Of a DNA stretch of 64,000 nucleotides, positions 2,234 to 31,739 are shown piece by piece. The notes beneath the pieces were generated by a model, which was not told the DNA's origin, made no database searches, and saw only the letters and a program-made list of their open reading frames with translations. The stretch comes from Sminthopsis crassicaudata (lineage: Eukaryota): contig NC_133619.1 in the NCBI RefSeq assembly GCF_048593235.1, positions 164,376,454 to 164,440,453 of the forward strand, in the 5' to 3' direction. Positions within the stretch are counted from its first letter, which is position 1. Each line of letters opens with the position of its first letter. Both the position numbers and the translations under genes were made by a program.

Positions 2234-2284
2234 TAAGGACCAAACAGCTGAAGTTATTAATGTGATATGTGTGCATGTATGTCT

Positions 2285-7355: not shown

Positions 7356-7361
7356 AATAAA
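7356..7361 (+). terminator. Polyadenylation signal AATAAA of the diverged copy
   Basis: ~106 nt after the stop; same position in all seven units. Confidence 0.6.
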
Positions 7362-8119: not shown

Positions 8120-8207
8120 CAGCAGTAAACTATAATATATTACTATAGTATACCAATGCACTTTAGTATACTATTAAACAATGCCAATGTACCCTGGATA
8201 TCTTAGA

Positions 8208-8480
8208 ATCAGCTGGAGTCAGGATAAGCAAAAGTTTTTATTCTTTGTGTTTTGGAATTGCTGTCAGGGGATTAGATATAGGAATCTCCACATCTCCTTT
8301 CTCTCTCTCTCCACCACCAAAGAATGATCCTGCTTGTCCTACTCCACCCTCTGATCTCTCTTCCCCTTCTTTGTCCACATCCAGAGATCCAGCCAGCAAA
8401 GAATTGAGTAAGGTCATCCTCCAAGCATATGTTAATAGAGAATTGTCCAAATGGTAATTAGCCTTAAGTGCTAGTTTACC
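8208..8480 (-). mobile_element. LTR-like fragment
   Basis: 'ggagtcaggataagcaaaagtttttattc' (antisense AATAAA) followed by a pyrimidine-rich U3-like stretch resembling marsupial ERV LTRs; recognition only. Confidence 0.35.
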
Positions 8481-10955: not shown

Positions 10956-10993
<38 letters not shown>

Positions 10994-11680
10994 TATTTGC
11001 TTTACTTTGTTTTTTAAGGTGTTATTTTTCTCAGTATTGCTTGTGTATGTGTGCATGTGTATGTGTGTTTAACAAGCTACTGACTTGTTTTTCATGATTT
11101 TCTTGGATCATTTGCCTTCCCAATTTTTATTCTACTTCTCTGACTTGATTTTGAAAATCTTTTTTGACTTTTTCCGTAAGCTGAAACCAATACCTATTTT
11201 TCTTGAAGGCTTTGGATGTAGGAGCTTTGACTTTGTTATTTTCTTCTGAGTTTCCATTTTGATTTTTCCTTGTCACTACTGTGCTTTTTATGGTGAAAAT
11301 ATTTTTTCTTGTTGTTTCCTTATTTTCACAAATTATTATTTAACTTTTCATTCTTTGTTAAAGTTGGGCTCTGTTTCCAGGGTAGAAAATGCACTGTCCT
11401 GAACTTTAGGCTTTTGTGCAGCTGTTTTCAGAGATCTTTCTGGGAATCAGCAACTTTTCTTACAAGGTAGTAGGATCTTAGCAGAGGTGTGTTTACTCCT
11501 CTTTTGACATGTGTTCTTGTCTGTGAATGACCACAGACACTCTTTTCTGTCCTGGAACTATGGCTGCAAACTCTAGTGTGCTAAATGCTCTTCCTCACTC
11601 TGGGACTGCTATCCAGGACTATGACCCAGAACCAAATATGGGCAAAACAGAGTCCTACCTCAGTGCTAGCAAAAAGACTC
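10141..11680 (-). mobile_element. L1 LINE 5' part (5' UTR plus decayed ORF1)
   Basis: Antisense ORF pieces 'KKWAFNEIKTFQAFLMNRPELNR' (ORF1 C-terminus) and coiled-coil heptads at 10689-10892; L1 5' UTR-like sequence at 11380-11680. Confidence 0.8.
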
Positions 11681-12795
11681 TGTGTGACCAAGTAACAGGT
11701 GTAGGTCATTATGCAGACAATTTAGCACAAATTAATTACTCTAGAGCAGCATATGAGCAAATTGCTGCTCCTGCTATCAAAGTATGGGGCATCCTCCCAG
11801 GAAGACAAGAGAGGGGAAGCCTTCATGAAAACAGCTCAAGGTCTGATTTTGTGGGATGTCTGCAGACAGCTGCCTACAAACTATTGGTGAAAATGCAGCA
11901 ACAGAAATTATGATAAGACAACTTGTAAAGAAAATGCTAATGAAGTTTGTAGAAGAATCATACTAGGACTACACAAGGATCATATGAGATCATGAGATGC
12001 TGTGCCACAGTGGACACAAATACCTTTTATACTCAAGTTATGATGCAAAACATGGGAAGACTAGGTCCCTTTTAGCAAAGGACTTCCAAAGAGATTCGTC
12101 AATACTTTCAATGTGGTAAAGTAGGGCATCAGAACGTTCAGTGTTGGCATAGAGATAGAATGAGAAGACAAGGTGGGAGAACAAGATCCAAAACTCCAAT
12201 GTCTAAAATACAACAGAAACTTCTATTGGGCATTAGAATGTAAATTGATTCATGGAAATGGGAAGTGGAGACCAACTGCTGAGCCCCAGGGAAAAAAAAC
12301 ACTTGGAGCATGATGGTAGCTAATGTAACAGCCAGAGAATCTTAAGAAGTTCAGTACTCAGATATGATGAATCAGTTAAGAAAAAACCTAATGGGAAAAA
12401 GGGATTACAATTGGGGAAAATAGAGTCATATGCAGCTGGGACCACTGAGATATACTCTGGAGAGGTGAAATCTGTCCCCAGCCATTTCACCTCCTGAGAG
12501 TGCTTTACAAAACTTTTTCCATACATACACTGATATAAGAAACTGGGAATATGTAGACACTATCCAGTCACTAATACAGGTAGACAATATGTGAGTTATC
12601 AACTAGGAGAAGTAGTAGCATCAGGTTTACTGATATGCTGATATTTGCCCAAACTTTGACTCCCAACAATAGAATCCAGGAATATTCTTGACTGACCATT
12701 CTATACTTACTATCAAATGTCATACCATTGGAAGGGTTGGTAGCTACAGGAACAGATTGTACAGTCATTAGAAGTTCAAATTGGCAAACCACAGT
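11681..12795 (+). mobile_element. Endogenous retrovirus internal remnant, betaretrovirus/ERV-K-like gag-(dUTPase)-pro, truncated on both sides
   Basis: Capsid-like 'DQVTGVGHYAD...YEQIA...DFVGCLQTA' and 'ENANEVCRRIILGL'; zinc knuckle YFQCGKVGHQNVQC (12103-12144) plus a second decayed knuckle; protease motif LVATGTDCTVI (from LVDTGAD) at 12737. Confidence 0.8.
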
Positions 12796-13501
12796 GGAAA
12801 GAGTGGAAGAACTTTGGGAAGTAGGAGTTCTCACCTTTTGAGGAGTAGATGAAAGGACCTTAAAGGGGCAAACAATAAAAAAAATGTAACAGCAACCTCC
12901 ATTCTGAAATGTTTTGTGGCAGAACAAAAAAAAAAAAAAAAAGAAGACTAACTTCTTTCTGAGAAAATATCTAAGAAGAAAGGAATCAGAAATAAGGTCC
13001 TTCTAAAATAATATTTTTAAAATCTAAAAATCCAGTGATTGAATCAAAATTATGAAAAGAGACCAAAAGAAGAAACTAAGGGGGAGGGATAGCAAAGGTT
13101 GATACTTGTTTTCTTCATGAAAGCCATGGGTGGGAAGCAATTTCTGAAAAAAATATTTTGTTTGGGGTGGGGGAGGAAGGGTGGTATGGGGGGAGTATGT
13201 GGATCTTGTGTTTGTGGGCAGATTTTTCGTTGCCATGTTTCTATCTCAGCACATAAGAGAGGTGATGTCTTGAGGCTTGCAAATGAGAATGTTGTTACTA
13301 AGTGACCCAATAAGGAGATGTCTCCAAGTTCAAGGAGGGAGGGAAGGAGTTTTCTTCTCAAGAGTTGCTGTCTCCTAAGGGTGGGATTAGAAGGAAGGTG
13401 AGAACTCAGCTCTCAAGCAGAGAGTGGGAATCCTCTCAAAAGACAAGAGTTGTCACCTTTTTGGGGGTGGAGTTAAGAGAAGGGCTAAGCAGGGGAAAAG
13501 A

Positions 13502-13509
13502 TATAAAAG
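13502..13509 (+). promoter_or_regulatory. TATA-like box of array copy 1 (others at 16606, 19707, 22814, 25920, 29022)
   Basis: TATAAAAG exactly 333 nt upstream of each start-codon position. Confidence 0.55.
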
Positions 13510-13623
13510 GCTCACACAACTCAGTGCCAATACTTCTTGCTGCCAGAGCTCCAGGGCAGGAGCTAGCTCTCTCCCTACCTGAAAAGGAAGGAATCAGAAG
13601 CTTAGGAACATACAAGCAAGAGT

Positions 13624-13834
13624 TTCATTGAAAGCCTCCAACTAGGTCTCACTTGCTTGCATCTGCCTGAACTACTTCACTGACTGGGTGACTGAGAGTG
13701 CAGAGAGAGTCTTCTCCAGGGCAGTGAGGGAGTCACTGAAGCCTCAACCTGTACAGAGTGCAGGGGAGTCATTCATCAGACAGGCTGACTTGCCGCTGAG
13801 CAGGAACCTGTAGACTCAGTGCACCACCGGCAAG
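13624..13834 (+). pseudogene. Decayed RING remnant in the leader of array copy 1 (present in all array units)
   Basis: LTC at 13654, ICLNYFTD at 13661, CTECRGVI at 13750, DLPLSRNL*TQCTTGK leading into the ATG; frameshifts and an in-frame TAG at 13811. Confidence 0.78.
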
Positions 13835-14995
13835 ATGCTCCAACCTCACCTGCTGCAGAAAGAGCTGGGCCTCAGCACCCGTGATCAACGTGGAGAACGA
13901 GTGATGTTCTTCTGTGAGGAAGACCACAGAGCCCTCTGTGATTCCTGTTTATCAGACCCAGAGCACAAGGACCACCAAGTCCTTCCCTTGGAGACAGCAG
14001 CTGACAAGTGCAACAACAAACTCCGGGAGATATGGAGGATCTTTCACACAAAAGAAAAGAAGCTTCAAACTACATGGGACACATTGAGAAGAGGAGAGGC
14101 ACAATTCACAGAGCATACCTGCACTTTGAAAGAGTCAGCTATTTCTGAATATGGGAAAATTCACGAGTTCTTGCGGGATGAAGAATGTCAACACCTTGAA
14201 GAGCTACAGCAGCAATACAGAGACAATGCAGTCCAACTGGAGGACAAGGAGCATGAGTTGTCCAAACATACCAAGAGTCTGCAACAAATGATGCTCCAAG
14301 TAGAAGAGAATTTGGACAAGATGCCCTTGGAAATGATCCAGAATATGCCAGGCACTTGGAAAAAGAAAGAAGAGCTCCTACTTAAAAAACCACAGCTTTC
14401 CTGCCTTTCCTGGCCTACCTGCCCTGTCACAGGCATGAGAGAAATGCTCATGAGTTTCTACAAGGATTTCACTTTTGATCCTGAATCAGCCCATCCTCAT
14501 CTCCTCCTGTCTGAAGATCTGAAGAGGGTCCAGTATGGAAGTATCTGTCAAGACCTGCCTGACAACAAAGGGAGACTTGACTCTGCTCTTAGGGTTTTAG
14601 GAGCCCAGGAATTCACCTCAGGAAAACATTATTGGGAAGTGGAGGTGGGTGACAAGACCGAATGGGAATTGGGCATTTGTAAAGATCCAGCCAGGAAAAA
14701 GGGGCTGATCTTCTCTCCTAAGCACGGAAGAACCATCCTAGGCTCCACATCTGAAAATGAATCCATTGTCTGGAAATCAGAAAAGGGCTATCATTGCAGC
14801 ACATCTGGACACATAGTGGGCATTTTTCTTGATTATGAAATGAGTTATATAGCATTTTATGATGCCATATATGGATACCTTAATGGCATAATAAACATAG
14901 ATTTTGAAGGGCCTCTTCGCCCTTATTTTTGTGCTTTCCTTTCAAAAGATGAGAGCACCCCTGTTTCACTGATCATTTGCCCCAAGTGTCCATAG
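13835..14995 (+). CDS. TRIML1-like: RING-less TRIML1-like protein, array copy 1 (386 aa)
   Basis: Intact ORF with a B-box lacking its first C/H ligands, coiled coil and PRY-SPRY. Confidence 0.85.
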   Translation: MLQPHLLQKELGLSTRDQRGERVMFFCEEDHRALCDSCLSDPEHKDHQVLPLETAADKCNNKLREIWRIFHTKEKKLQTTWDTLRRGEAQFTEHTCTLKESAISEYGKIHEFLRDEECQHLEELQQQYRDNAVQLEDKEHELSKHTKSLQQMMLQVEENLDKMPLEMIQNMPGTWKKKEELLLKKPQLSCLSWPTCPVTGMREMLMSFYKDFTFDPESAHPHLLLSEDLKRVQYGSICQDLPDNKGRLDSALRVLGAQEFTSGKHYWEVEVGDKTEWELGICKDPARKKGLIFSPKHGRTILGSTSENESIVWKSEKGYHCSTSGHIVGIFLDYEMSYIAFYDAIYGYLNGIINIDFEGPLRPYFCAFLSKDESTPVSLIICPKCP

Positions 14996-15100
14996 TAGAG
15001 GGCTTTCACAGATACTAATGACTAAGAATGACTATGAAAACTGAATGAAGATAACACTGCCAGTGGCACTCTATTTCTTTGTATTCCTGTTGAAATGGTC

Positions 15101-15106
15101 AATAAA
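15101..15106 (+). terminator. Polyadenylation signal of copy 1 (others at 18205, 21309, 24415, 27521, 30623)
   Basis: AATAAA ~105 nt after each stop codon. Confidence 0.6.
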
Positions 15107-16264
15107 GCATGATTATTTAAACCAAGAAAGCACTTTGTTTATCCTTCTTGTCATAAAAAAGGACAGGTCATATTTTTTTTTTTTTCCTTTCCCTTTAGTG
15201 GCTGATCTTCCAGCACCTAATGTGAAAGGGGAGGCTTTCAGAAGGATAGGAGAAAAAGCGGGAGGAAAGAAAATGGGAAGGGAAAAAGTTCCAGGTAGAA
15301 AAGGAGGAAGAGCAAAATTTGCAATGCTAAATAATTGGAGGAATAAAGAAACAACCAAAACAATAAGGAAGCAAACAAATAAATAAAGAAAAAAAAGACA
15401 AGCTCTCTTCTTGAAGGACTAGAGAGTGGAGTATGCAAAATCTGTTGCTCTGAGAAAGAGAGAGATCTACTTGAGGATAAGAGCAGACTCAAATATCTTT
15501 TATTAAATTAGAAAATATGAGATATGTACAGGCATCAAGGTGTTGTGGAGGACTGAAATAAATCAGTCCTCAACTGAGCAGGAAACTGAAGCAAGACATT
15601 TTGCCAAATTCACTTTCATTTCGTCCTTCTGTTTTTCTACCCTTCTCTTGTAGAACTTTTTGTGCCTCTTCTGAGAGTTATCCCATTATGGAATACAATC
15701 CAGAACATGAGTGATATTGTCACCATGTGTCCAGGTTAAAGAGCATTTTAATTTGAAGCCAATTAAACTCAATCTGCAATGTTCTGAGAAATTGAAGGGT
15801 AAAATGACTGTGGTCTAAAGTATATAGGTGTGAACAGCATTGTGTATCTGTCATTTCAATGGAGTATTTTTAAAGGGAGAGCACTAGCTCCAGTGAAGAG
15901 AGTGGAAGCTCTTTGCAAAGTGGGAGTTCTCACCTTCTGAGCAGTAAATAAAAGAACCTTCATGGGGCAAACAATGAAAAAAATAATAAAATTAGCAATT
16001 TAGTTCTCGGTTCTTCGTGGCAAGAACCAAAAGGAGAAACCAATGTTCTTTCCAAGTTGAATATCTAAAAAGAAAGGAATCAGAAATAAGGTCCTTTTAA
16101 AAAATCTTTTATACATATACAGATATCTTAATCTGATGATTGAATCATAATTAGGAAATGAGGCAAAAAGGGGAAAATAAGGGGGAGGGATAGCAAAGGT
16201 TGATCCTTGTTTTCTTCATGGGAGCCATGGGTGGGAAGCAATTTCTGAAAAAAAGATTTTGTCT

Positions 16265-16324
16265 GGGGTGGGGAAGGGTGGGGGGCATGCGGGGTGGGGG
16301 TGGGGGTGGAGGTGCTTGGGGGGG
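16265..16324 (+). other. G-rich, G-quadruplex-prone tract in each spacer (also 19366-19425, 22473-22532, 25579-25638, 28683-28741)
   Basis: More than seven runs of G3 or longer within 60 nt. Confidence 0.7.
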
Positions 16325-17007
16325 TGTCTTTCCTTGTCATGTTTCCATCTCAGAACATCAGAAAGGTGATATCTTGAGGTTTGCAAATGAGAATGTTACT
16401 GCTAAGTGACCCAATGGGAAGATCTTTCCAAATACTAAGAGGGAGGGAAGGAGTTTTCTTCTCAAGAGATGCTGACTCTGAAGGGTGGGATTAGAAGGAA
16501 GGTGAGAACTCAGCCCTGAAGCAGAGGGTGGAAGTCCTCTCAAAAGACAAGAGTTGTCACCTTTTTGGGGGTGGAGTTAAGAGAAGGGCTAAGCAGGGGA
16601 AAAGATATAAAAGGCTCACACAACTCAGTGCCAATACTTTTTGCTGCCAGAGCTCCAGGGCAGGAGCTAGCTCTCTCCCTACCTGAAAAGGAAGGAATCA
16701 GAAGCTTAGGAACATACAAGCAAGAGTTTCATTGAAAGCCTCCAGCTAGGTCTCACTTGCTTGCATCTGCCTGAACTACTTCACTGACTGGGTGACTGAG
16801 AGTGCAGAGAGAGTCTTCTCCAGGGCAGTGAGGGAGTCACTGAAGCCTCAACCTGTACAGAGTGCAGGGGAGTCATTCATCAGACAGGCTGACTTGCCGC
16901 TGAGCAGGAACCTGTAGACTCAGTGCACCACCGGCAAGATTCTCCAACCTCACCTGCTGCAGAAAGAGCTGGGCCTCAGCACCCGTGATCAACGTGGAGA
17001 ACGAGTG

Positions 17008-18099
17008 ATGTTCTTCTGTGAGGAAGACCACAGAGCCCTCTGTGATTCCTGTTTATCAGACCCAGAGCACAAGGACCACCAAGTCCTTCCCTTGGAGACA
17101 GCAGCTGACAAGTGCAACAACAAACTCCGGGAGATATGGAGGATCTTTCACACAAAAGAAAAGAAGCTTCAAACTACATGGGACACATTGAGAAGAGGAG
17201 AGGCACAATTCACAGAGCATACCTGCACTTTGAAAGAGTCAGCTATTTCTGAATATGGGAAAATTCACGAGTTCTTGCGGGATGAAGAATGTCAACACCT
17301 TGAAGAGCTACAGCAGCAATACAGAGACAATGCAGTCCAACTGGAGGACAAGGAGCATGAGTTGTCCAAACATACCAAGAGTCTGCAACAAATGATGCTC
17401 CAAGTAGAAGAGAATTTGGACAAGATGCCCTTGGAAATGATCCAGAATATGCCAGGCACTTGGAAAAAGAAAGAAGAGCTCCTACTTAAAAAACCACAGC
17501 TTTCCTGCCTTTCCTGGCCTACCTGCCCTGTCACAGGCATGAGAGAAATGCTCATGAGTTTCTACAAGGATTTCACTTTTGATCCTGAATCAGCCCATCC
17601 TCATCTCCTCCTGTCTGAAGATCTGAAGAGGGTCCAGTATGGAAGTATCTGTCAAGACCTGCCTGACAACAAAGGGAGACTTGACTCTGCTCTTAGGGTT
17701 TTAGGAGCCCAGGAATTCACCTCAGGAAAACATTATTGGGAAGTGGAGGTGGGTGACAAGACCGAATGGGAATTGGGCATCTGTAAAGATCCAGCCAGGA
17801 AAAAGGGGCTGATCTTCTCTCCTAAGCACGGAAGAACCATCCTAGGCTCCACATCTGAAAATGAATCCATTGTCTGGAAATCAGAAAAGGGCTATCATTG
17901 CAGCACATCTGGACACATAGTGGGCATGTTTCTTGATTATGAAATGAGTTATATAGCATTTTATGATGCCATATATGGATACCTTAATGGCATAATAAAC
18001 ATAGATTTTGAAGGGCCTCTTCGCCCTTATTTCTGTGCTTTCCTTTCAAAAGATGAGAGCACCCCTGTTTCACTGATCATTTGCCCCAAGTGTCCATAG
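17008..18099 (+). CDS. TRIML1-like: RING-less TRIML1-like protein, array copy 2; first ATG mutated to ATT (16939), next ATG gives 363 aa
   Basis: 'ggcaagATTctccaa' versus 'ggcaagATGctccaa' in the other copies; the ORF is otherwise intact. Confidence 0.7.
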   Translation: MFFCEEDHRALCDSCLSDPEHKDHQVLPLETAADKCNNKLREIWRIFHTKEKKLQTTWDTLRRGEAQFTEHTCTLKESAISEYGKIHEFLRDEECQHLEELQQQYRDNAVQLEDKEHELSKHTKSLQQMMLQVEENLDKMPLEMIQNMPGTWKKKEELLLKKPQLSCLSWPTCPVTGMREMLMSFYKDFTFDPESAHPHLLLSEDLKRVQYGSICQDLPDNKGRLDSALRVLGAQEFTSGKHYWEVEVGDKTEWELGICKDPARKKGLIFSPKHGRTILGSTSENESIVWKSEKGYHCSTSGHIVGMFLDYEMSYIAFYDAIYGYLNGIINIDFEGPLRPYFCAFLSKDESTPVSLIICPKCP

Positions 18100-20039
18100 T
18101 AGAGGGCTTTCACAGATACTAATGACTAAGAATGACTAGGAAAACTGAATGAAGATAACACTGCCAGTGGCACTCTATTTCTTTGTATTCCTGTTGAAAT
18201 GGTCAATAAAGCATGATTATTAAAACCAAGAAAGCACTTTGTTTATCCTTCTCGTCATAAAAAAGGACAGGCCATTTTTTTTTTTTCCTTTCCCTTTAGT
18301 GGCTGATCTTCCAGCACCTAATGTGAAAGGGGAGGCTTTCAGAAGGATAGGAGAAAAAGCGGGAGGAAAGAAAATGGGAAGGGAAAAAGTTCCAGGTAGA
18401 AAAGGAGGAAGAGCAAAATTTGCAATGCTAAATAATTGGAGGAATAAAGAAACAACCAAAACAATAAGGAAGCAAACAAAGAAATAAAGAAAAAAAAGAC
18501 AAGCTCTCTTCTTGAAGGACTAGAGAGTGGAGTATGCAAAATCTGTTGCTCTGAGAAAGAGAGAGATCTACTTGAGGATAAGAGCAGACTCAAATATCTT
18601 TTATTAAATTAGAAAATATGAGATATGTACAGGCATCAAGGTGTTGTGGAGGACTGAAATAAATCAGTCCTCAACTGAGCAGGAAACTGAAGCAAGACAT
18701 TTTGCCAAATTCACTTTCATTTCGTCCTTCTGTTTTTCTACCCTTCTCTTGTAGAACTTTTTGTGCCTCTTCTGAGAGTTATCCCATTATGGAATACAAT
18801 CCAGAACATGAGTGATATTGTCACCATGTGTCCAGGTTAAAGAGCATTTTAATTTGAAGCCAATTAAACTCAATCTGCAATGTTCTGAGAAATTGAAGGG
18901 TAAAATGACTGTGGTCTAAAGTATATAGGTGTGAACAGCATTGTGTATCTGTCATTTCAATGGAGTATTTTTAAAGGGAGAGCACTAGCCCCAGTGAAGA
19001 GAGTGGAAGCACTTTGCAAAGTGGGAGTTCTCACCTTCTGAGCAGTAAATAAAAGAACCTTCGTGGGGCAAACAATGAAAAAAATAATAAAATTAGCAAT
19101 TTAGTTCTCGGCTCTTTGTGGCAAGAACCAAAAGGAGAAACCAATGTTCTTTCCAAGTTGAATATCTAAAAAGAAAGGAATCAGAAATAAGGTCCTTTTA
19201 AAAAATCTTTTATACATATACAGATATCTTAATCTGATGATTGAATCATAATTAGGAAATGAGGCAAAAAGGGGAAAATAAGGGGGAGGGATAGCAAAGG
19301 TTGATCCTTGTTTTCTTCATGGGAGCCATGGGTGGGAAGCAATTTCTGAAAAAAAGATTTTGTCTGGGGTGGGGAAGGGTGGGGGGCATGCGGGGTGGGG
19401 GTGGGGGTGGAGGTGCTTGGGGGGGTGTCTTTCCTTGTCATGTTTCCATCTCAGAACATCAGAAAGGTGATATCTTGAGGTTTGCAAATGAGAATGTTAC
19501 TGCTAAGTGACCCAATGGGAAGATCTTTCCAAATACTAAGAGGGAGGGAAGGAGTTTTCTTCTCAAGAGATGCTGACTCTGAAGGGTGGGATTAGAAGGA
19601 AGGTGAGAACTCAGCCCTGAAGCAGAGGGTGGAAGTCCTCTCAAAAGACAAGAGTTGTCACCTTTTTGGGGGTGGAGTTAAGAGAAGGGCTAAGCAGGGG
19701 AAAAGATATAAAAGGCTCACACAACTCAGTGCCTATACTTTTTGCTGCCAGAGCTCCAGGGCAGGAGCTAGCTCTCTCCCTACCTGAAAAGGAAGGGATC
19801 AGAAGCTTAGGAACATACAAGCAAGAGTTTCATTGAAAGCCTCCAGCTAGGTCTCACTTGCTTGCATCTGCCTGAACTACTTCACTGACTGGGTGACTGA
19901 GAGTGCAGAGAGAGTCTTCTCCAGGGCAGTGAGGGAGTCACTGAAGCCTCAACCTGTACAGAGTGCAGGGGAGTCATTCATCAGACAGGCTGACTTGCCG
20001 CTGAGCAGGAACCTGTAGACTCAGTGCACCACCGGCAAG

Positions 20040-21201
20040 ATGCTCCAACCTCACCTGCTGCAGAAAGAGATGGGCCTCAGCACCCGTGATCAACGTGGAG
20101 AACGAGTGATGTTCTTCTGTGAGGAAGACCACAGAGCCCTCTGTGATTCCTGTTTATCAGACCCAGAGCACAAGGACCACCAAGTCCTTCCCTTGGAGAC
20201 AGCAGCTGACAAGTGCAACAACAAACTCCGGGAGATATGGAGGATCTTTCACACAAAAGAAAAGAAGCTTCAAACTGCATGGGACACATTGAGAAGAGGA
20301 GAGGCACAATTCACAGAGCATACCTGCACTTTGAAAGAGTCAGCTATTTCTGAATATGGGAAAATTCACGAGTTCTTGCGGGATGAAGAATGTCAACACC
20401 TTGAAGAGCTACAGCAGCAATACAGAGACAATGCAGTCCAACTGGAGGACAAGGAGCATGAGTTGTCCAAACATACCAAGAGTCTGCAACAAATGATGCT
20501 CCAAGTAGAAGAGGATTTGGACAAGATGCCCTTGGAAATGATCCAGAATATGCCAGGCACTTGGAAAAAGAAAGAAGAGCTCCTACTTAAAAAAACCACA
20601 GCTTTCCTGCCTTTCCTGGCCTACCTGCCCTGTCACAGGCATGAGAGAAATGCTCATGAGTTTCTACAAGGATTTCACTTTTGATCCTGAATCAGCCCAT
20701 CCTCATCTCCTCCTGTCTGAAGATCTGAAGAGGGTCCAGTATGGAAGTATCTGTCAAGACCTGCCTGACAACAAAGGGAGACTTGACTCTGCTCTTAGGG
20801 TTTTAGGAGCCCAGGAATTCACCTCAGGAAAACATTATTGGGAAGTGGAGGTGGGTGACAAGACCGAATGGGAATTGGGCATCTGTAAAGATCCAGCCAG
20901 GAAAAAGGGGCTGATCTTCTCTCCTAAGCACGGAAGAACCATCCTAGGCTCCACATCTGAAAATGAATCCATTGTCTGGAAATCAGAAAAGGGCTATCAT
21001 TGCAGCACATCTGGACACATAGTGGGCATTTTTCTTGATTATGAAATGAGTTATATAGCATTTTATGATGCCATATATGGATACCTTAATGGCATAATAA
21101 ACATAGATTTTGAAGGGCCACTTCGCCCTTATTTCTGTGCTTTCCTTTCAAAAGATGAGAGCACTCCTGTTTCACTGATCATTTGCCCCAAGTGTCCATA
21201 G
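20040..21201 (+). pseudogene. TRIML1-like: TRIML1-like array copy 3 with a +1 frameshift (A7 instead of A6 at 20589-20595); real pseudogene/truncated allele or a homopolymer error
   Basis: ORF is split into 20040-20684 and 20641-21201; the only disruption seen is one extra A. Confidence 0.7.
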
Positions 21202-23146
21202 TAGAGGGCTTTCACAGATACTAATGACTAAGAATGACTTTATGAAAACTGAAAGAAGATAACACTGCCAGTGGCACTCTATTTCTTTGTATTCCTGTTG
21301 AAATGGTCAATAAAGCATGATTATTTAAACCAAGAAAGCACTTTGTTTATCCTTCTTGTCATAAAAAAGGACAGGTCATATTTTTTTTTTTTTCCTTTCC
21401 CTTTAGTGGCTGATCTTCCAGCACCTAATGTGAAAGGGGAGGCTTTCAGAAGGATAGGAGAAAAAGCGGGAGGAAAGAAAATGGGAAGGGAAAAAGTTCC
21501 AGGTAGAAAAGGAGGAAGAGCAAAATTTGCAATGCTAAATAATTGGAGGAATAAAGAAACAACCAAAACAATAAGGAAGCAAACAAATAAATAAAGAAAA
21601 AAAAGACAAGCTCTCTTCTTGAAGGACTAGAGAGTGGAGTATGCAAAATCTGTTGCTCTGAGAAAGAGAGAGATCTACTTGAGGATAAGAGCAGACTCAA
21701 ATATCTTTTATTAAATTAGAAAATATGAGATATGTACAGGCATCAAGGTGTTGTGGAGGACTGAAATAAATCAGTCCTCAACTGAGCAGGAAACTGAAGC
21801 AAGACATTTTGCCAAATTCACTTTCATTTCGTCCTTCTGTTTTTCTACCCTTCTCTTGTAGAACTTTTTGTGCCTCTTCTGAGAGTTATCCCATTATGGA
21901 ATACAATCCAGAACATGAGTGATATTGTCACCATGTGTCCAGGTTAAAGAGCATTTTAATTTAAAGCCAATTAAACTCAATCTGCAATGTTCTGAGAAAT
22001 TGAAGGGTAAAATGACTGTGGTCTAAAGTATATAGGTGTGAACAGCATTGTGTATCTGTCATTTCAATGGAGTATTTTTAAAGGGAGAGCACTAGCCCCA
22101 GTGAAGAGAGTGGAAGCACTTTGCAAAGTGGGAGTTCTCACCTTCTGAGCAGTAAATAAAAGAACCTTCGTGGGGCAAACAATGAAAAAAATAATAAAAT
22201 TAGCAATTTAGTTCTCGGTTCTTTGTGGCAAGAACCAAAAGGAGAAACCAATGTTCTTTCCAAGTTGAATATCTAAAAAGAAAGGAATCAGAAATAAGGT
22301 CCTTTTAAAAAATCTTTTATACATATACAGATATCTTAATCTGATGATTGAATCATAATTAGGAAATGAGGCAAAAAGGGGAAAATAAGGGGGAGGGATA
22401 GCAAAGGTTGATCCTTGTTTTCTTCATGGGAGCCATGGGTGGGAAGCAATTTCTGAAAAAAAGATTTTGTCTGGGGTGGGGAAGGGTGGGGGGCATGCGG
22501 GGTGGGGGTGGGGGTGGGGGTGGTTGGGGGGGTGTCTTTCCTTGTCATGTTTCCATCTCAGCACATCAGAAAGGTGATATCTTGAGGTTTGCAAATGAGA
22601 ATGTTACTGCTAAGTGACCCAATGGGAAGATCTTTCCAAATACTAAGAGGGAGGGAAGGAGTTTTCTTCTCAAGAGATGCTGACTCTGAAGGGTGGGATT
22701 AGAAGGAAGGTGAGAGCTCAGCCCTGAAGCAGAGGGTGGAAGTCCTCTCAAAAGACAAGAGTTGTCACCTTTTGGGGGGTGGAGTTAAGAGAAGGGCTAA
22801 GCAGGGGAAAAGATATAAAAGGCTCACACAACTCAGTGCCAATACTTTTTGCTGCCAGAGCTCCAGGGCAGGAGCTAACTCTCTCCCTACCTGAAAAGGA
22901 AGGGATCAGAAGCTTAGGAACATACAAGCAAGAGTTTCATTGAAAGCCCTCAGCTAGGTCTCACTTGCTTGCATCTGCCTGAACTACTTCACTGACTGGG
23001 TGACTGAGAGTCTAGAGAGAGTCTTCTCCAGGGCAGTGAGGGAGTCACTGAAGCCTCAACCTGTACAGAGTGCAGGGGAGTCATTCATCAGACAGGCTGA
23101 CTTGCCGCTGAGCAGGAACCTGTAGACTCAGTGCACCACCGGCAAG

Positions 23147-24307
23147 ATGCTCCAACCTCACCTGCTGCAGAAAGAGATGGGCCTCAGCACCCGTGATCAA
23201 CGTGGAGAACGAGTGATGTTCTTCTGTGAGGAAGACCACAGAGCCCTCTGTGATTCCTGTTTATCAGACCCAGAGCACAAGGACCACCAAGTCCTTCCCT
23301 TGGAGACAGCAGCTGACAAGTGCAACAACAAACTCCGGGAGATATGGAGGATCTTTCACACAAAAGAAAAGAAGCTTCAAACTGCATGGGACACATTGAG
23401 AAGAGGAGAGGCACAATTCACAGAGCATACCTGCACTTTGAAAGAGTCAGCTATTTCTGAATATGGGAAAATTCACGAGTTCTTACGGGATGAAGAATGT
23501 CAACACCTTGAAGAGCTACAGCAGCAATACAGAGACAATGCAGTCCAACTGGAGGACAAGGAGCATGAGTTGTCCAAACATACCAAGAGTCTGCAACAAA
23601 TGATGCTCCAAGTAGAAGAGGATTTGGACAAGATGCCCTTGGAAATGATCCAGAATATGCCAGGCACTTGGAAAAAGAAAGAAGAGCTCCTACTTAAAAA
23701 ACCACAGCTTTCCTGCCTTTCCTGGCCTACCTGCCCTGTCACAGGCATGAGAGAAATGCTCATGAGTTTCTACAAGGATTTCACTTTTGATCCTGAATCA
23801 GCCCATCCTCATCTCCTCCTGTCTGAAGATCTGAAGAGGGTCCAGTATGGAAGTATCTGTCAAGACCTGCCTGACAACAAAGGGAGACTTGACTCTGCTC
23901 TTAGGGTTTTAGGAGCCCAGGAATTCACCTCAGGAAAACATTATTGGGAAGTGGAGGTGGGTGACAAGACCGAATGGGAATTGGGCATCTGTAAAGATCC
24001 AGCCAGGAAAAAGGGGCTGATCTTCTCTCCTAAGCACGGAAGAACCATCCTAGGCTCCACATCTGAAAATGAATCCATTGTCTGGAAATCAGAAAAGGGC
24101 TATCATTGCAGCACATCTGGACACATAGTGGGCATTTTTCTTGATTATGAAATGAGTTATATAGCATTTTATGATGCCATATATGGATACCTTAATGGCA
24201 TAATAAACATAGATTTTGAAGGGCCACTTCGCCCTTATTTCTGTGCTTTCCTTTCAAAAGATGAGAGCACTCCTGTTTCACTGATCATTTGCCCCAAGTG
24301 TCCATAG
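23147..24307 (+). CDS. TRIML1-like: RING-less TRIML1-like protein, array copy 4 (386 aa)
   Basis: Intact ORF; translation identical to copies 5 and 6. Confidence 0.85.
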   Translation: MLQPHLLQKEMGLSTRDQRGERVMFFCEEDHRALCDSCLSDPEHKDHQVLPLETAADKCNNKLREIWRIFHTKEKKLQTAWDTLRRGEAQFTEHTCTLKESAISEYGKIHEFLRDEECQHLEELQQQYRDNAVQLEDKEHELSKHTKSLQQMMLQVEEDLDKMPLEMIQNMPGTWKKKEELLLKKPQLSCLSWPTCPVTGMREMLMSFYKDFTFDPESAHPHLLLSEDLKRVQYGSICQDLPDNKGRLDSALRVLGAQEFTSGKHYWEVEVGDKTEWELGICKDPARKKGLIFSPKHGRTILGSTSENESIVWKSEKGYHCSTSGHIVGIFLDYEMSYIAFYDAIYGYLNGIINIDFEGPLRPYFCAFLSKDESTPVSLIICPKCP

Positions 24308-26252
24308 TAGAGGGCTTTCACAGATACTAATGACTAAGAATGACTTTATGAAAACTGAAAGAAGATAACACTGCCAGTGGCACTCTATTTCTTTGTATTC
24401 CTGTTGAAATGGTCAATAAAGCATGATTATTTAAACCAAGAAAGCACTTTGTTTATCCTTCTTGTCATAAAAAAGGACAGGTCATATTTTTTTTTTTTTC
24501 CTTTCCCTTTAGTGGCTGATCTTCCAGCACCTAATGTGAAAGGGGAGGCTTTCAGAAGGATAGGAGAAAAAGCGGGAGGAAAGAAAATGGGAAGGGAAAA
24601 AGTTCCAGGTAGAAAAGGAGGAAGAGCAAAATTTGCAATGCTAAATAATTGGAGGAATAAAGAAACAACCAAAACAATAAGGAAGCAAACAAATAAATAA
24701 AGAAAAAAAAGACAAGCTCTCTTCTTGAAGGACTAGAGAGTGGAGTATGCAAAATCTGTTGCTCTGAGAAAGAGAGAGATCTACTTGAGGATAAGAGCAG
24801 ACTCAAATATCTTTTATTAAATTAGAAAATATGAGATATGTACAGGCATCAAGGTGTTGTGGAGGACTGAAATAAATCAGTCCTCAACTGAGCAGGAAAC
24901 TGAAGCAAGACATTTTGCCAAATTCACTTTCATTTCGTCCTTCTGTTTTTCTACCCTTCTCTTGTAGAACTTTTTGTGCCTCTTCTGAGAGTTATCCCAT
25001 TATGGAATACAATCCAGAACATGAGTGATATTGTCACCATGTGTCCAGGTTAAAGAGCATTTTAATTTAAAGCCAATTAAACTCAATCTGCAATGTTCTG
25101 AGAAATTGAAGGGTAAAATGACTGTGGTCTAAAGTATATAGGTGTGAACAGCATTGTGTATCTGTCATTTCAATGGAGTATTTTTAAAGGGAGAGCACTA
25201 GCCCCAGTGAAGAGAGTGGAAGCACTTTGCAAAGTGGGAGTTCTCACCTTCTGAGCAGTAAATAAAAGAACCTTCGTGGGGCAAACAATGAAAAAAATAA
25301 TAAAATTAGCAATTTAGTTCTCGGTTCTTTGTGGCAAGAACCAAAAGGAGAAACCAATGTTCTTTCCAAGTTGAATATCTAAAAAGAAAGGAATCAGAAA
25401 TAAGGTCCTTTTAAAAAATCTTTTATACATATACAGATATCTTAATCTGATGATTGAATCATAATTAGGAAATGAGGCAAAAAGGGGAAAATAAGGGGGA
25501 GGGATAGCAAAGGTTGATCCTTGTTTTCTTCATGGGAGCCATGGGTGGGAAGCAATTTCTGAAAAAAAGATTTTGTCTGGGGTGGGGAAGGGTGGGGGGC
25601 ATGCGGGGTGGGGGTGGGGGTGGGGGTGGTTGGGGGGGTGTCTTTCCTTGTCATGTTTCCATCTCAGCACATCAGAAAGGTGATATCTTGAGGTTTGCAA
25701 ATGAGAATGTTACTGCTAAGTGACCCAATGGGAAGATCTTTCCAAATACTAAGAGGGAGGGAAGGAGTTTTCTTCTCAAGAGATGCTGACTCTGAAGGGT
25801 GGGATTAGAAGGAAGGTGAGAACTCAGCCCTGAAGCAGAGGGTGGAAGTCCTCTCAAAAGACAAGAGTTGTCACCTTTTGGGGGGTGGAGTTAAGAGAAG
25901 GGCTAAGCAGGGGAAAAGATATAAAAGGCTCACACAACTCAGTGCCAATACTTTTTGCTGCCAGAGCTCCAGGGCAGGAGCTAGCTCTCTCCCTACCTGA
26001 AAAGGAAGGGATCAGAAGCTTAGGAACATACAAGCAAGAGTTTCATTGAAAGCCTCCAGCTAGGTCTCACTTGCTTGCATCTGCCTGAACTACTTCACTG
26101 ACTGGGTGACTGAGAGTGCAGAGAGAGTCTTCTCCAGGGCAGTGAGGGAGTCACTGAAGCCTCAACCTGTACAGAGTGCAGGGGAGTCATTCATCAGACA
26201 GGCTGACTTGCCGCTGAGCAGGAACCTGTAGACTCAGTGCACCACCGGCAAG

Positions 26253-27413
26253 ATGCTCCAACCTCACCTGCTGCAGAAAGAGATGGGCCTCAGCACCCGT
26301 GATCAACGTGGAGAACGAGTGATGTTCTTCTGTGAGGAAGACCACAGAGCCCTCTGTGATTCCTGTTTATCAGACCCAGAGCACAAGGACCACCAAGTCC
26401 TTCCCTTGGAGACAGCAGCTGACAAGTGCAACAACAAACTCCGGGAGATATGGAGGATCTTTCACACAAAAGAAAAGAAGCTTCAAACTGCATGGGACAC
26501 ATTGAGAAGAGGAGAGGCACAATTCACAGAGCATACCTGCACTTTGAAAGAGTCAGCTATTTCTGAATATGGGAAAATTCACGAGTTCTTACGGGATGAA
26601 GAATGTCAACACCTTGAAGAGCTACAGCAGCAATACAGAGACAATGCAGTCCAACTGGAGGACAAGGAGCATGAGTTGTCCAAACATACCAAGAGTCTGC
26701 AACAAATGATGCTCCAAGTAGAAGAGGATTTGGACAAGATGCCCTTGGAAATGATCCAGAATATGCCAGGCACTTGGAAAAAGAAAGAAGAGCTCCTACT
26801 TAAAAAACCACAGCTTTCCTGCCTTTCCTGGCCTACCTGCCCTGTCACAGGCATGAGAGAAATGCTCATGAGTTTCTACAAGGATTTCACTTTTGATCCT
26901 GAATCAGCCCATCCTCATCTCCTCCTGTCTGAAGATCTGAAGAGGGTCCAGTATGGAAGTATCTGTCAAGACCTGCCTGACAACAAAGGGAGACTTGACT
27001 CTGCTCTTAGGGTTTTAGGAGCCCAGGAATTCACCTCAGGAAAACATTATTGGGAAGTGGAGGTGGGTGACAAGACCGAATGGGAATTGGGCATCTGTAA
27101 AGATCCAGCCAGGAAAAAGGGGCTGATCTTCTCTCCTAAGCACGGAAGAACCATCCTAGGCTCCACATCTGAAAATGAATCCATTGTCTGGAAATCAGAA
27201 AAGGGCTATCATTGCAGCACATCTGGACACATAGTGGGCATTTTTCTTGATTATGAAATGAGTTATATAGCATTTTATGATGCCATATATGGATACCTTA
27301 ATGGCATAATAAACATAGATTTTGAAGGGCCACTTCGCCCTTATTTCTGTGCTTTCCTTTCAAAAGATGAGAGCACTCCTGTTTCACTGATCATTTGCCC
27401 CAAGTGTCCATAG
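26253..27413 (+). CDS. TRIML1-like: RING-less TRIML1-like protein, array copy 5 (386 aa)
   Basis: Intact ORF. Confidence 0.85.
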   Translation: MLQPHLLQKEMGLSTRDQRGERVMFFCEEDHRALCDSCLSDPEHKDHQVLPLETAADKCNNKLREIWRIFHTKEKKLQTAWDTLRRGEAQFTEHTCTLKESAISEYGKIHEFLRDEECQHLEELQQQYRDNAVQLEDKEHELSKHTKSLQQMMLQVEEDLDKMPLEMIQNMPGTWKKKEELLLKKPQLSCLSWPTCPVTGMREMLMSFYKDFTFDPESAHPHLLLSEDLKRVQYGSICQDLPDNKGRLDSALRVLGAQEFTSGKHYWEVEVGDKTEWELGICKDPARKKGLIFSPKHGRTILGSTSENESIVWKSEKGYHCSTSGHIVGIFLDYEMSYIAFYDAIYGYLNGIINIDFEGPLRPYFCAFLSKDESTPVSLIICPKCP

Positions 27414-29354
27414 TAGAGGGCTTTCACAGATACTAATGACTAAGAATGACTTTATGAAAACTGAAAGAAGATAACACTGCCAGTGGCACTCTATTTCTTT
27501 GTATTCCTGTTGAAATGGTCAATAAAGCATGATTATTTAAACCAAGAAAGCACTTTGTTTATCCTTCTTGTCATAAAAAGGACAGGTCATATTTTTTTTT
27601 TTTTCCTTTCCCTTTAGTGGCTGATCTTCCAGCACCTAATGTGAAAGGGGAGGCTTTCAGAAGGATAGGAGAAAAAGCGGGAGGAAAGAAAATGGGAAGG
27701 GAAAAAGTTCCAGGTAGAAAAGGAGGAAGAGCAAAATTTGCAATGCTAAATAATTGGAGGAATAAAGAAACAACCAAAACAATAAGGAAGCAAACAAATA
27801 AATAAAGAAAAAAAAGACAAGCTCTCTTCTTGAAGGACTAGAGAGTGGAGTATGCAAAATCTGTTGCTCTGAGAAAGAGAGAGATCTACTTGAGGATAAG
27901 AGCAGACTCAAATATCTTTTATTAAATTAGAAAATATGAGATATGTACAGGCATCAAGGTGTTGTGGAGGACTGAAATAAATCAGTCCTCAACTGAGCAG
28001 GAAACTGAAGCAAGACATTTTGCCAAATTCACTTTCATTTCGTCCTTCTGTTTTTCTACCCTTCTCTTGTAGAACTTTTTGTGCCTCTTCTGAGAGTTAT
28101 CCCATTATGGAATACAATCCAGAACATGAGTGATATTGTCACCATGTGTCCAGGTTAAAGAGCATTTTAATTTGAAGCCAATTAAACTCAATCTGCAATG
28201 TTCTGAGAAATTGAAGGGTAAAATGACTGTGGTCTAAAGTATATAGGTGTGAACAGCATTGTGTATCTGTCATTTCAATGGAGTATTTTTAAAGGGAGAG
28301 CACTAGCCCCAGTGAAGAGAGTGGAAGCACTTTGCAAAGTGGGAGTTCTCACCTTCTGAGCAGTAAATAAAAGAACCTTCGTGGGGCAAACAATGAAAAA
28401 AATAATAAAATTAGCAATTTAGTTCTCGGTTCTTTGTGGCAAGAACCAAAAGGAGAAACCAATGTTCTTTCCAAGTTGAATATCTAAAAAGAAAGGAATC
28501 AGAAATAAGGTCCTTTTAAAAAATCTTTTATACATATACAGATATCTTAATCTGATGATTGAATCATAATTAGGAAATGAGGCAAAAAGGGGAAAATAAG
28601 GGGGAGGGATAGCAAAGGTTGATCCTTGTTTTCTTCATGGGAGCCATGGGTGGGAAGCAATTTCTGAAAAAAGATTTTGTCTGGGGTGGGGAAGGGTGGG
28701 GGGCATGCGGGGTGGGGGTGGGGGTGGGGGTGGTTGGGGGGTGTCTTTCCTTGTCATGTTTCCATCTCAGCACATCAGAAAGGTGATATCTTGAGGTTTG
28801 CAAATGAGAATGTTACTGCTAAGTGACCCAATGGGAAGATCTTTCCAAATACTAAGAGGAGGGAAGGAGTTTTCTTCTCAAGAGATGCTGACTCTGAAGG
28901 GTGGGATTAGAAGGAAGGTGAGAACTCAGCCCTGAAGCAGAGGGTGGAAGTCCTCTCAAAAGACAAGAGTTGTCACCTTTTGGGGGGTGGAGTTAAGAGA
29001 AGGGCTAAGCAGGGGAAAAGATATAAAAGGCTCACACAACTCAGTGCCAATACTTTTTGCTGCCAGAGCTCCAGGGCAGGAGCTAGCTCTCTCCCTACCT
29101 GAAAAGGAAGGGATCAGAAGCTTAGGAACATACAAGCAAGAGTTTCATTGAAAGCCTCCAGCTAGGTCTCACTTGCTTGCATCTGCCTGAACTACTTCAC
29201 TGACTGGGTGACTGAGAGTGCAGAGAGAGTCTTCTCCAGGGCAGTGAGGGAGTCACTGAAGCCTCAACCTGTACAGAGTGCAGGGGAGTCATTCATCAGA
29301 CAGGCTGACTTGCCGCTGAGCAGGAACCTGTAGACTCAGTGCACCACCGGCAAG

Positions 29355-30515
29355 ATGCTCCAACCTCACCTGCTGCAGAAAGAGATGGGCCTCAGCACCC
29401 GTGATCAACGTGGAGAACGAGTGATGTTCTTCTGTGAGGAAGACCACAGAGCCCTCTGTGATTCCTGTTTATCAGACCCAGAGCACAAGGACCACCAAGT
29501 CCTTCCCTTGGAGACAGCAGCTGACAAGTGCAACAACAAACTCCGGGAGATATGGAGGATCTTTCACACAAAAGAAAAGAAGCTTCAAACTGCATGGGAC
29601 ACATTGAGAAGAGGAGAGGCACAATTCACAGAGCATACCTGCACTTTGAAAGAGTCAGCTATTTCTGAATATGGGAAAATTCACGAGTTCTTACGGGATG
29701 AAGAATGTCAACACCTTGAAGAGCTACAGCAGCAATACAGAGACAATGCAGTCCAACTGGAGGACAAGGAGCATGAGTTGTCCAAACATACCAAGAGTCT
29801 GCAACAAATGATGCTCCAAGTAGAAGAGGATTTGGACAAGATGCCCTTGGAAATGATCCAGAATATGCCAGGCACTTGGAAAAAGAAAGAAGAGCTCCTA
29901 CTTAAAAAACCACAGCTTTCCTGCCTTTCCTGGCCTACCTGCCCTGTCACAGGCATGAGAGAAATGCTCATGAGTTTCTACAAGGATTTCACTTTTGATC
30001 CTGAATCAGCCCATCCTCATCTCCTCCTGTCTGAAGATCTGAAGAGGGTCCAGTATGGAAGTATCTGTCAAGACCTGCCTGACAACAAAGGGAGACTTGA
30101 CTCTGCTCTTAGGGTTTTAGGAGCCCAGGAATTCACCTCAGGAAAACATTATTGGGAAGTGGAGGTGGGTGACAAGACCGAATGGGAATTGGGCATCTGT
30201 AAAGATCCAGCCAGGAAAAAGGGGCTGATCTTCTCTCCTAAGCACGGAAGAACCATCCTAGGCTCCACATCTGAAAATGAATCCATTGTCTGGAAATCAG
30301 AAAAGGGCTATCATTGCAGCACATCTGGACACATAGTGGGCATTTTTCTTGATTATGAAATGAGTTATATAGCATTTTATGATGCCATATATGGATACCT
30401 TAATGGCATAATAAACATAGATTTTGAAGGGCCACTTCGCCCTTATTTCTGTGCTTTCCTTTCAAAAGATGAGAGCACTCCTGTTTCACTGATCATTTGC
30501 CCCAAGTGTCCATAG
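29355..30515 (+). CDS. TRIML1-like: RING-less TRIML1-like protein, array copy 6 (386 aa)
   Basis: Intact ORF. Confidence 0.85.
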   Translation: MLQPHLLQKEMGLSTRDQRGERVMFFCEEDHRALCDSCLSDPEHKDHQVLPLETAADKCNNKLREIWRIFHTKEKKLQTAWDTLRRGEAQFTEHTCTLKESAISEYGKIHEFLRDEECQHLEELQQQYRDNAVQLEDKEHELSKHTKSLQQMMLQVEEDLDKMPLEMIQNMPGTWKKKEELLLKKPQLSCLSWPTCPVTGMREMLMSFYKDFTFDPESAHPHLLLSEDLKRVQYGSICQDLPDNKGRLDSALRVLGAQEFTSGKHYWEVEVGDKTEWELGICKDPARKKGLIFSPKHGRTILGSTSENESIVWKSEKGYHCSTSGHIVGIFLDYEMSYIAFYDAIYGYLNGIINIDFEGPLRPYFCAFLSKDESTPVSLIICPKCP

Positions 30516-31739
30516 TAGAGGGCTTTCACAGATACTAATGACTAAGAATGACTTTATGAAAACTGAAAGAAGATAACACTGCCAGTGGCACTCTATTTCT
30601 TTGTATTCCTGTTGAAATGGTCAATAAAGCATGATTATTTAAACCAAGAAAGCACTTTGTTTATCCTTCTTGTCATAAAAAAGGACAGGTCATATTTTTT
30701 TTTTTTTCCTTTCCCTTTAGTGGCTGATCTTCCAGCACCTAATGTGAAAGGGGAGGCTTTCAGAAGGATAGGAGAAAAAGCGGGAGGAAAGAAAATGGGA
30801 AGGGAAAAAGTTCCAGGTAGAAAAGGAGGAAGAGCAAAATTTGCAATGCTAAATAATTGGAGGAATAAAGAAACAACCAAAACAATAAGGAAGCAAACAA
30901 ATAAATAAAGAAAAAAAAGACAAGCTCTCTTCTTGAAGGACTAGAGAGTGGAGTATGCAAAATCTGTTGCTCTGAGAAAGAGAGAGATCTACTTGAGGAT
31001 AAGAGCAGACTCAAATATCTTTTATTAAATTAGAAAATATGAGATATGTACAGGCATCAAGGTGTTGTGGAGGACTGAAATAAATCAGTCCTCAACTGAG
31101 CAGGAAACTGAAGCAAGACATTTTGCCAAATTCACTTTCATTTCGTCCTTCTGTTTTTCTACCCTTCTCTTGTAGAACTTTTTGTGCCTCTTCTGAGAGT
31201 TATCCCATTATGGAATACAATCCAGAACATGAGTGATATTGTCACCATGTGTCCAGGTTAAAGAGCATTTTAATTTGAAGCCAATTAAACTCAATCTGCA
31301 ATGTTCTGAGAAATTGAAGGGTAAAATGACTGTGGTCTAAAGTATATAGGTGTGAACAGCATTGTGTATCTGTCATTTCAATGGAGTATTTTTAAAGGGA
31401 GAGCACTAGCCCCAGTGAAGAGAGTGGAAGCACTTTGCAAAGTGGGAGTTCTCACCTTCTGAGCAGTAAATAAAAGAACCTTCGTGGGGCAAACAATGAA
31501 AAAAATAATAAAATTAGCAATTTAGTTCTCGGCTCTTTGTGGCAAGAACCAAAAGGAGAAACCAATGTTCTTTCCAAGTTGAATATCTAAAAAGAAAGGA
31601 ATCAGAAATAAGGTCCTTTTAAAAAATCTTTTATACATATACAGATATCTTAATCTGATGATTGAATCATAATTAGGAAATGAGGCAAAAAGGGGAAAAT
31701 AAGGGGGAGGGATAGCAAAGGTTGATCCTTGTTTTCTTC

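Follow-up and report, generated by a model that had tools for sequence, protein, structure and literature searches.

Lineage-specific tandem expansions of TRIM genes with PRY/SPRY domains are known, with the TRIM5 arrays of some mammals and the finTRIMs of fish as prominent examples, and the members of these arrays generally keep their RING domain. Loss of the RING has been described for TRIML2, which according to Zhang et al. lacks both RING and B-box and evolves with a ratio of non-synonymous to synonymous substitution rates (dN/dS, or omega) of 0.437 (PMC6993854). TRIML2 is reported to be absent from marsupials (PMC6993854), and both papers that treat the gene hold that marsupial TRIML1 has retained its RING, so that a RING-less TRIML has been regarded as specific to eutherians (PMC6993854, PMC12007913). 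Expression of TRIML2 is biased towards the placenta, where it has been linked to the damping of trophoblast inflammation (PMC6993854), and the TRIML genes more generally are reported to be gonad-, embryo- and placenta-biased (PMC6993854, PMC12007913). Beyond these two TRIML2 papers, we found no literature on marsupial TRIM expansions or on TRIML1 in dunnarts. Here we detail a locus of the fat-tailed dunnart Sminthopsis crassicaudata (chromosome CM109183.1, ~164.38-164.44 Mb), where a 64-kb stretch of DNA, hereafter the window, carries a tandem array of RING-less, TRIML1-like genes on its + strand. Taken as a whole, the evidence makes it probable that this array is the youngest burst of a dasyurid family of RING-less TRIML1-like genes, that these genes are still under selection, and that their product is a non-catalytic binder acting through its SPRY domain.

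The architecture of the locus is best appreciated from its repeats. A repeat search of the window recovered seven in-register copies, spaced by 7755-7763 bp and then by 3101-3107 bp; Tandem Repeats Finder gave no output, its longest period of 500 bp lying below the length of the unit. When unit 5 (25330-28431) was used as BLASTN query and reference against the 64-kb window, the young array was bounded at 12966-31532 and resolved into six tandem units of ~3.1 kb, comprising an edge copy, unit 1 (12966-16012), followed by unit 2 (16017-19111), unit 3 (19117-22220), unit 4 (22224-25326), unit 5 itself and unit 6 (28435-31532). A seventh unit is represented by its initial 202 bp (31538-31739), 100% identical to positions 1-202 of unit 5, with which the array ends. 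Over the full unit length, units 2-6 share 99.1-100% identity (units 5 and 6 are ~100% identical across 3.1 kb); their identity to unit 1 is 96.5%. The 5' spacer of unit 1 is ~86% identical to that of the other units, which is the same level as the older unit, and near-identity starts at ~13440-13450, the remainder of the unit being 98-100% identical. The original prediction had placed the array at 13430-31739; since homogeneity begins at ~13440 and the seventh-unit piece ends exactly at 31739, these bounds mark the young homogenised block precisely. The older paralog, predicted at 6080, was likewise found in place, as an open reading frame (ORF) of 389 residues from its ATG with an intact B-box (6080-7249). 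It sits inside an older repeat unit (5165-7843; 81% identical to unit 5 by BLASTN) with a TATA box near 5739 and a relic of a RING at 5853-6079, and is preceded by the partial tail, or 3' spacer, of an older repeat unit (4265-5149, matching unit 5 positions 2204-3082 at 80.6% identity by BLASTN).

An intact 386-codon ORF is present in four of the six young units, namely units 1 (13835-14995), 4 (23147-24307), 5 (26253-27413) and 6 (29355-30515), the last three being mutually identical; that of unit 1 specifies a degenerate B-box, a coiled coil and PRY/SPRY. The expectation that all six units encode the protein consequently held for these four. In unit 2 (ORF at 16939-18099) the start codon is gone but the rest of the frame is open; translation from the following in-frame Met, at codon 24, could give a product of 363 residues. 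A single frameshift splits the gene of unit 3 (20040-21201) into ORFs of 214 and 186 residues. Signals for expression surround these frames. A TATA box 333 nt upstream of the start codon (25920-25927 in unit 5) is conserved in the six units and the older copy, the 450 nt upstream of the ORF contain no ATG in any of the seven, the start codon has an A at -3, and an AATAAA lies 106-108 nt past the stop at a position conserved across units (108 nt in unit 5, at 27521-27526). A shuffle test of one 305-nt leader gave P about 0.01 for the lack of an ATG, a value to be taken as indicative because the copies are not independent. Judged by these signals, each 3.1-kb unit appears to be a complete, self-contained intronless gene.

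The predicted protein is recognizably a TRIM. Pfam detects B-box, PRY and SPRY in the array protein (E=1.9e-17 for PRY and E=1.4e-14 for SPRY) and likewise in the older paralog, and finds a RING in neither. The B-box of the array protein scores 30.9 bits against a zf-B_box cutoff of 24.1, a match that covers profile positions 12-42 only and in which the first two ligands are Arg. In an AlphaFold model of moderate confidence (mean predicted local distance difference test score 64, PRY region below 50), which was used for secondary-structure layout only, a small B-box-like region is followed by a helix of ~110 residues (52-160), as is typical of the antiparallel coiled coil of TRIMs, and by linker helices and a beta-sandwich. 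The top fold matches to this model in the PDB are full-length TRIM72 and the CHS-B30.2 portion of pyrin, and the closest sequence matches to PRY/SPRY are TRIM58, TRIM11 and TRIM21. Model helix, Pfam domains and fold matches together point to a long coiled coil followed by PRY/SPRY, as in a class IV TRIM; the N-terminal RING with eight zinc ligands that also belongs to this class is lacking from the array protein.

What became of the RING can be read directly upstream of the start codon. Alignments by tblastn with RING-bearing relatives run on past the ATG in the same frame, to ~residue 12-14 of the full-length proteins, and an in-frame RING relic adjoins the ORF on its 5' side in all seven copies. 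In unit 1 this relic (13615-13834; E about 1e-6) is the ATG-free leader of the gene, and its counterparts in units 2-6, recovered on the same basis, lie at 16719-16938, 19820-20039, 22927-23146, 26033-26252 and 29135-29354. Translated, the relics are RING-like but interrupted: the array copies carry two in-frame stops, the older copy has a larger number, and no relic preserves more than two of the eight zinc ligands. Twelve RING-domain queries run against the whole 64-kb window at E up to 10 returned the seven relics and nothing else at E <0.1. Because the relic is adjacent and in frame, and because no other RING lies in the window, we place the RING on the same exon as the ORF, where it decayed. 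Single-exon ORFs typify the window genes and their relatives in Sarcophilus, Antechinus and Dromiciops. The RING-bearing Trichosurus relative P0018 has a gene span of 1407 bp for 468 residues, equal to its coding length, and since this gene is RING-bearing yet single-exon, the RING never had an exon of its own in this subfamily. By comparison, gene spans of 24.8 kb for dog TRIML1 and 5.6 kb for a basal marsupial TRIML1 (P0076, from Macrotis) imply that those genes have introns. All of this indicates that the RING loss is genuine and took the form of in-place decay into an untranslated leader. Pfam, the relic and the search of the window thus all agree with the original prediction of a B-box, coiled coil and PRY/SPRY protein without a RING, save that the B-box of the array copies has itself lost two zinc ligands.

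The relic also dates the loss. We compared leaders from three dasyurids (Sminthopsis, Antechinus and Sarcophilus) and from Dromiciops, and found a 1-nt indel inside the first Cys pair of the RING that is common to all six dasyurid sequences and absent from Dromiciops. As every sampled dasyurid member is RING-less and the relics share this indel, the loss must be older than the array, and the alignment indicates that the RING was lost once, before Sminthopsis, Antechinus and Sarcophilus split. An independent, lineage-specific RING loss followed by amplification had been proposed, and both the independence from TRIML2, on the strength of the trees described below, and the order of events are upheld; the loss belongs neither to this array nor to this species, being common to all dasyurid members, and the array is just one of several in a multi-megabase cluster.

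RING-less TRIML1-like genes with the same start Met are also seen in Dromiciops (L006) and Trichosurus (P0014, P0021, P0023), where RING-bearing sisters stand alongside them. The Dromiciops relic carries different lesions and is much better preserved, on account of which a separate loss is probable in Dromiciops; in Trichosurus there was perhaps another. Tree support on whether the RING-less genes of these two genera share the dasyurid loss amounts to 12-18% bootstrap. The different lesions in Dromiciops make RING loss look recurrent in the intronless subfamily. Moreover, the leaders of Sarcophilus and Antechinus (L004, L005) contain an ATG at ~-220 that aligns with an ATG at -213 in Dromiciops and is mutated in the Sminthopsis window copies. 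This is probably the ancestral RING start codon, and in Sarcophilus and Antechinus it would open a short upstream ORF; with its mutation in Sminthopsis, the AUG of the RING-less ORF comes first in the predicted dunnart mRNA. Divergence of the leader is ~0.4-0.8 of the synonymous divergence (dS) of the coding sequence, which fits some constraint on the 5' leader, or conversion.

Phylogenetic placement was obtained from neighbor-joining trees with 200 bootstraps, which are approximate given the gene conversion described below. As had been anticipated, the window proteins fall inside the TRIML clade (98-99% bootstrap) when set against TRIM58, TRIM21, TRIM39-like and TRIM11-like sequences; a marsupial-only expansion of the intronless type that holds them has 94-99% support, and a dasyurid clade, RING-less in every member sampled, has 100%. 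TRIML2 of Myotis and Rattus forms a separate clade (100% bootstrap) without the window proteins, and the RING loss in the latter is therefore independent of that in TRIML2. TRIM60 and TRIM75, proposed as comparators in the original prediction, never came up as named matches. The best eutherian match of the window proteins is TRIML1, at 36-40% identity and E about 1e-67, and they are nevertheless not TRIML1 orthologues, since tree and gene structure set them apart from the single-copy, intron-containing, RING-bearing TRIML1. On the chromosome, a cluster of such genes spans at least 2.8 Mb around the window. NCBI has already annotated them, with models that are predictions, under the name 'putative E3 ubiquitin-protein ligase TRIML1', which for the RING-less window genes is a misnomer; the consecutive accessions XP_074158088 to XP_074158130 denote relatives encoded on this chromosome. 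Additional copies and arrays are found there at 164.33, 165.6 and 167.16 Mb, spaced by ~3.1-3.3 kb and including some broken copies, and a similar tandem arrangement with the same spacing occurs in Antechinus. Trees and genomic setting together identify the array, in our view, as the youngest tandem burst of an old, dasyurid-specific family of RING-less genes.

Several measures of coding constraint bear on whether the family is alive. Pairwise dN/dS among the RING-less genes is 0.43-0.57, with bootstrap confidence intervals that exclude 1, and thus stands clear of the value near 1 that the original prediction had named as telling against it. When the 167-209 observed substitutions were placed at random, the ORF stayed open in 0-0.23% of simulations. 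Between the older and the young units, the coding sequence contains 6 gap columns in 1161 nt and the adjacent 3' flank 61 in 473 nt; the coding indels are codon-length, because both ORFs remain open. Pseudogenes in tandem would be expected to show omega about 1 and random stops and frameshifts, which is not what the RING-less genes display. Even between the youngest copies, 5-6 synonymous stand against 3-5 non-synonymous changes (omega 0.15-0.21). Within SPRY, sliding windows gave ratios of non-synonymous to synonymous differences (pN/pS) of 0.08-0.14 in the core (residues 256-285) and, for the array against the older copy, 1.3-1.7 in a loop region (residues 286-330), in windows too small for formal significance; fast SPRY loops around a conserved core are the usual pattern of a scaffold with binding loops. 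The substitution patterns argue that the RING-less genes are under purifying selection and not dead.

Superimposed on selection is gene conversion. It is evident from dS, which is 0.045 across the B-box region (the first 55 codons) and 0.32-0.37 in other parts of the gene. A paralog at 165.6 Mb (P0002, L007:10001-11161) was also seen to be chimeric, with a coiled-coil half all but identical to the older copy of the window (dS 0.046) and a PRY/SPRY half all but identical to the array copies (dS 0.017); this chimera shows that arrays separated by more than 1 Mb have exchanged sequence. Because of such conversion, the pairwise rates and neighbor-joining trees are approximate. These patterns indicate that the family evolves by tandem duplication plus gene conversion.

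How a gene of this kind might work can be set out in steps. Each unit would be transcribed from its TATA box to yield an mRNA with the fossil RING as leader, the 386-codon ORF, and an end at AATAAA. The protein, by analogy with TRIMs in general, would dimerize via an antiparallel coiled coil and so present two SPRY domains; having no RING, it should be unable to recruit an E2 enzyme itself. It may then act as a SPRY-mediated binder that either masks or sequesters a ligand or joins RING-bearing relatives as a modulating subunit, with several identical copies raising the dose. A number of observations weigh against this reading of the locus as a burst of selected SPRY binders. Of the six young copies, two are defective, unit 2 lacking its start codon and unit 3 carrying one frameshift. 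The youngest-copy dN/dS of 0.15-0.21 is based on 8-11 substitutions only, and the gene conversion in the B-box region blurs the rates. The structural model is moderate. Among dasyurids, the nearest RING-bearing relative to turn up shares no more than 52% identity, which leaves hetero-oligomerization hypothetical. Lastly, the array copies have Arg in place of the first two B-box zinc ligands, a Cys and a His, so that the first zinc site of the B-box is compromised, and these losses could mark the onset of decay.

The last of these points is the natural starting place for the alternative that survives best, in which the young array consists of dying genes, a recently amplified block without current function that is heading for pseudogenization. 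The two ligands that it has lost are kept in the older paralog, in other dunnart paralogs, and in Sarcophilus and Antechinus, and at least 90% of the 45 relatives compared share the Cys (C16). The losses were sequential, as copies 1.2 Mb away at 165.6 Mb carry the His-to-Arg change alone; the Cys-to-Arg change is limited to array-type copies. Decay in two steps, on top of a RING that is already a fossil, a B-box dN/dS of about 1 in comparisons involving the array, and damage to a third of the units, is what a dying block might look like. It is harder to reconcile with four perfect 386-codon ORFs, three of them identical, with young-copy changes that are mostly synonymous, or with the retention of TATA box, ATG-free leader and polyadenylation signal throughout, and the wider RING-less clade has been constrained since before the dasyurid radiation. 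We consider the dying-array account unlikely on this balance, and continue to favor genes that remain under selection.

Two further proposals accept that the genes function and differ in the role that they assign. The more far-reaching holds that dasyurids independently evolved and amplified a TRIML2-like, ligase-dead TRIM, cut short at the linker position where TRIML2 begins and with a B-box that is now decaying too, and that this TRIM could serve as a dose-dependent SPRY binder, either in reproduction or embryo-maternal signaling or in the intracellular sensor niche of the TRIM5 cluster, which has been reported missing in marsupials (PMC10709114). This is speculative and, to our minds, rather unlikely in so specific a form. 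The other, put forward in the original prediction, takes the products for partners of RING-bearing TRIML1-like paralogs that act as decoys or dominant-negatives and damp inflammation in the manner of TRIML2, in the germline or where fetal and maternal tissues meet. Its attraction is that the architecture converges on that of TRIML2 in linker start, missing RING and B-box decay in some lineages, that dN/dS lies near the published TRIML2 omega of 0.437 (PMC6993854), and that the reported expression bias of TRIML genes is towards just such tissues (PMC6993854, PMC12007913). The window genes, however, are not TRIML2 orthologues, a potential RING-bearing dasyurid partner is no closer than the 52% identity given above, and the family arose within dasyurids and not at the origin of marsupial placentation. 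A decoy role of this kind is, accordingly, improbable, and the antiviral role also raised in the original prediction is speculative.

It might also be suspected that the copy number or the near-identity of the units is an artefact of assembly, through an over-expanded or mis-joined repeat. Units as alike as 5 and 6 are hard to assemble, and the window does contain a run of N elsewhere (243 N at 49814-50056, its sole such run, representing an assembly gap or masked sequence). Private differences nonetheless mark the units, such as the lost start of unit 2, the frameshift of unit 3 and variants in the spacers; the array is bounded by a clean edge copy on one side and by a truncated unit on the other; and arrays of the same design recur in Antechinus and, on the dunnart chromosome, at 165.6 and 167.16 Mb. 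An assembly error is very improbable as the source of the pattern. That a RING is still supplied, via an upstream spliced exon (a general possibility named in the original prediction) or read-through of the relic, is scarcely credible, given that the only RING-like sequences in 64 kb are seven relics with stops, a shared frameshift and lost ligands, and that RING-bearing relatives in the subfamily such as P0018 are single-exon.

The remainder of the window offers a few features of its own. All units contain in their 5' spacer, ~650 nt upstream of the ATG, a G-rich tract resembling (GGGGT)n (25575-25640 in unit 5, and at the same offset in the others); lying close to the unit boundary, it may be prone to recombination or form a G-quadruplex. 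Between the older unit and the young array, ~5 kb (7843-12789) are unrelated to the repeat unit; an ORF therein (11527-11913) has a sub-threshold match to retroviral Gag p24 (E=5e-5, 23.6 bits against a 24-bit cutoff), and no flanking direct or inverted repeats of at least 60 nt and no pair of long terminal repeats were found for this spacer, which may be a retroelement remnant. An AT-rich region (27-35% GC) fills 32-64 kb, and within it an ORF fragment at 58589-58933 matches reverse transcriptase (RVT_1, E=7e-14) and is probably a decayed retroelement. A 103-residue ORF at 61972-62283 shows a weak match to 7tm_1 below the cutoff (E=5e-4, 20 bits against 30.5), which could be chance or a fragment of a receptor pseudogene.

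The annotation of these genes, the existence of lineage-specific TRIM arrays, and RING-less TRIMs as kinds were all known beforehand. What the locus adds is an entire dasyurid clade of intronless TRIML1-like genes in which one RING loss appears to have been followed by selection on the remainder of the protein for tens of millions of years, in a family that keeps amplifying in short tandem arrays and that has converged on the start point and the pattern of domain loss of eutherian TRIML2. It thereby qualifies the published statement that a RING-less TRIML is eutherian-specific (PMC6993854, PMC12007913), and an independent dasyurid TRIML2-like TRIM, if true, would contradict the view of such a protein as a eutherian-only innovation. 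The locus moreover provides a natural series for the study of a TRIM without its catalytic domain, in which the RING has gone, then one B-box zinc ligand, and then a second.

Set beside the known systems, the family resembles each in part. TRIM72, with B-box, coiled coil and SPRY, and the CHS-B30.2 portion of pyrin are its best full-length matches in fold, and TRIM72 also matches in sequence over residues 22-365; identity is only 20-23%, native TRIM72 has a RING, and no functional inference is transferable from either. With the TRIM5 arrays and the finTRIMs it shares tandem birth and death, near-identical young copies beside pseudogenes, and fast SPRY loops around a conserved core, and it differs from them in that the whole of the expanded clade is RING-less. 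TRIML1 is its best eutherian match and groups with it against TRIM58, TRIM21, TRIM39 and TRIM11, whereas true TRIML1 has both RING and introns and the window genes are RING-less members of a marsupial-only, intronless-type expansion.

The closest parallel is with TRIML2. Both belong to the TRIML clade, lack a RING, and couple a coiled coil to PRY/SPRY. Both also begin in the linker between RING and B-box, as had been suggested in the original prediction: in our alignment, the TRIML2 proteins of rat and Myotis start 3 and 9 residues, respectively, before the position of the window start Met. Selection is relaxed but purifying in each (a published omega of 0.437 against 0.43-0.57 for the window genes), and in both families the B-box is kept in some members and decayed in others. 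For TRIML2 itself, we observed that the Myotis brandtii protein (P0221) has a Pfam-significant B-box with all ligand positions and that the rat protein (P0317) has no Pfam B-box, so that decay of the B-box in TRIML2 is lineage-dependent and the published description of TRIML2 as lacking it is not valid for all eutherians. The differences are equally plain. TRIML2 is a single-copy gene and forms a separate clade, whereas the window genes are a tandem intronless family in which the RING decayed in place and its relic is still visible; placental expression and anti-inflammatory data belong to TRIML2 only. The parallel between the two is real and lies in architecture, a case of convergence and not of common descent.

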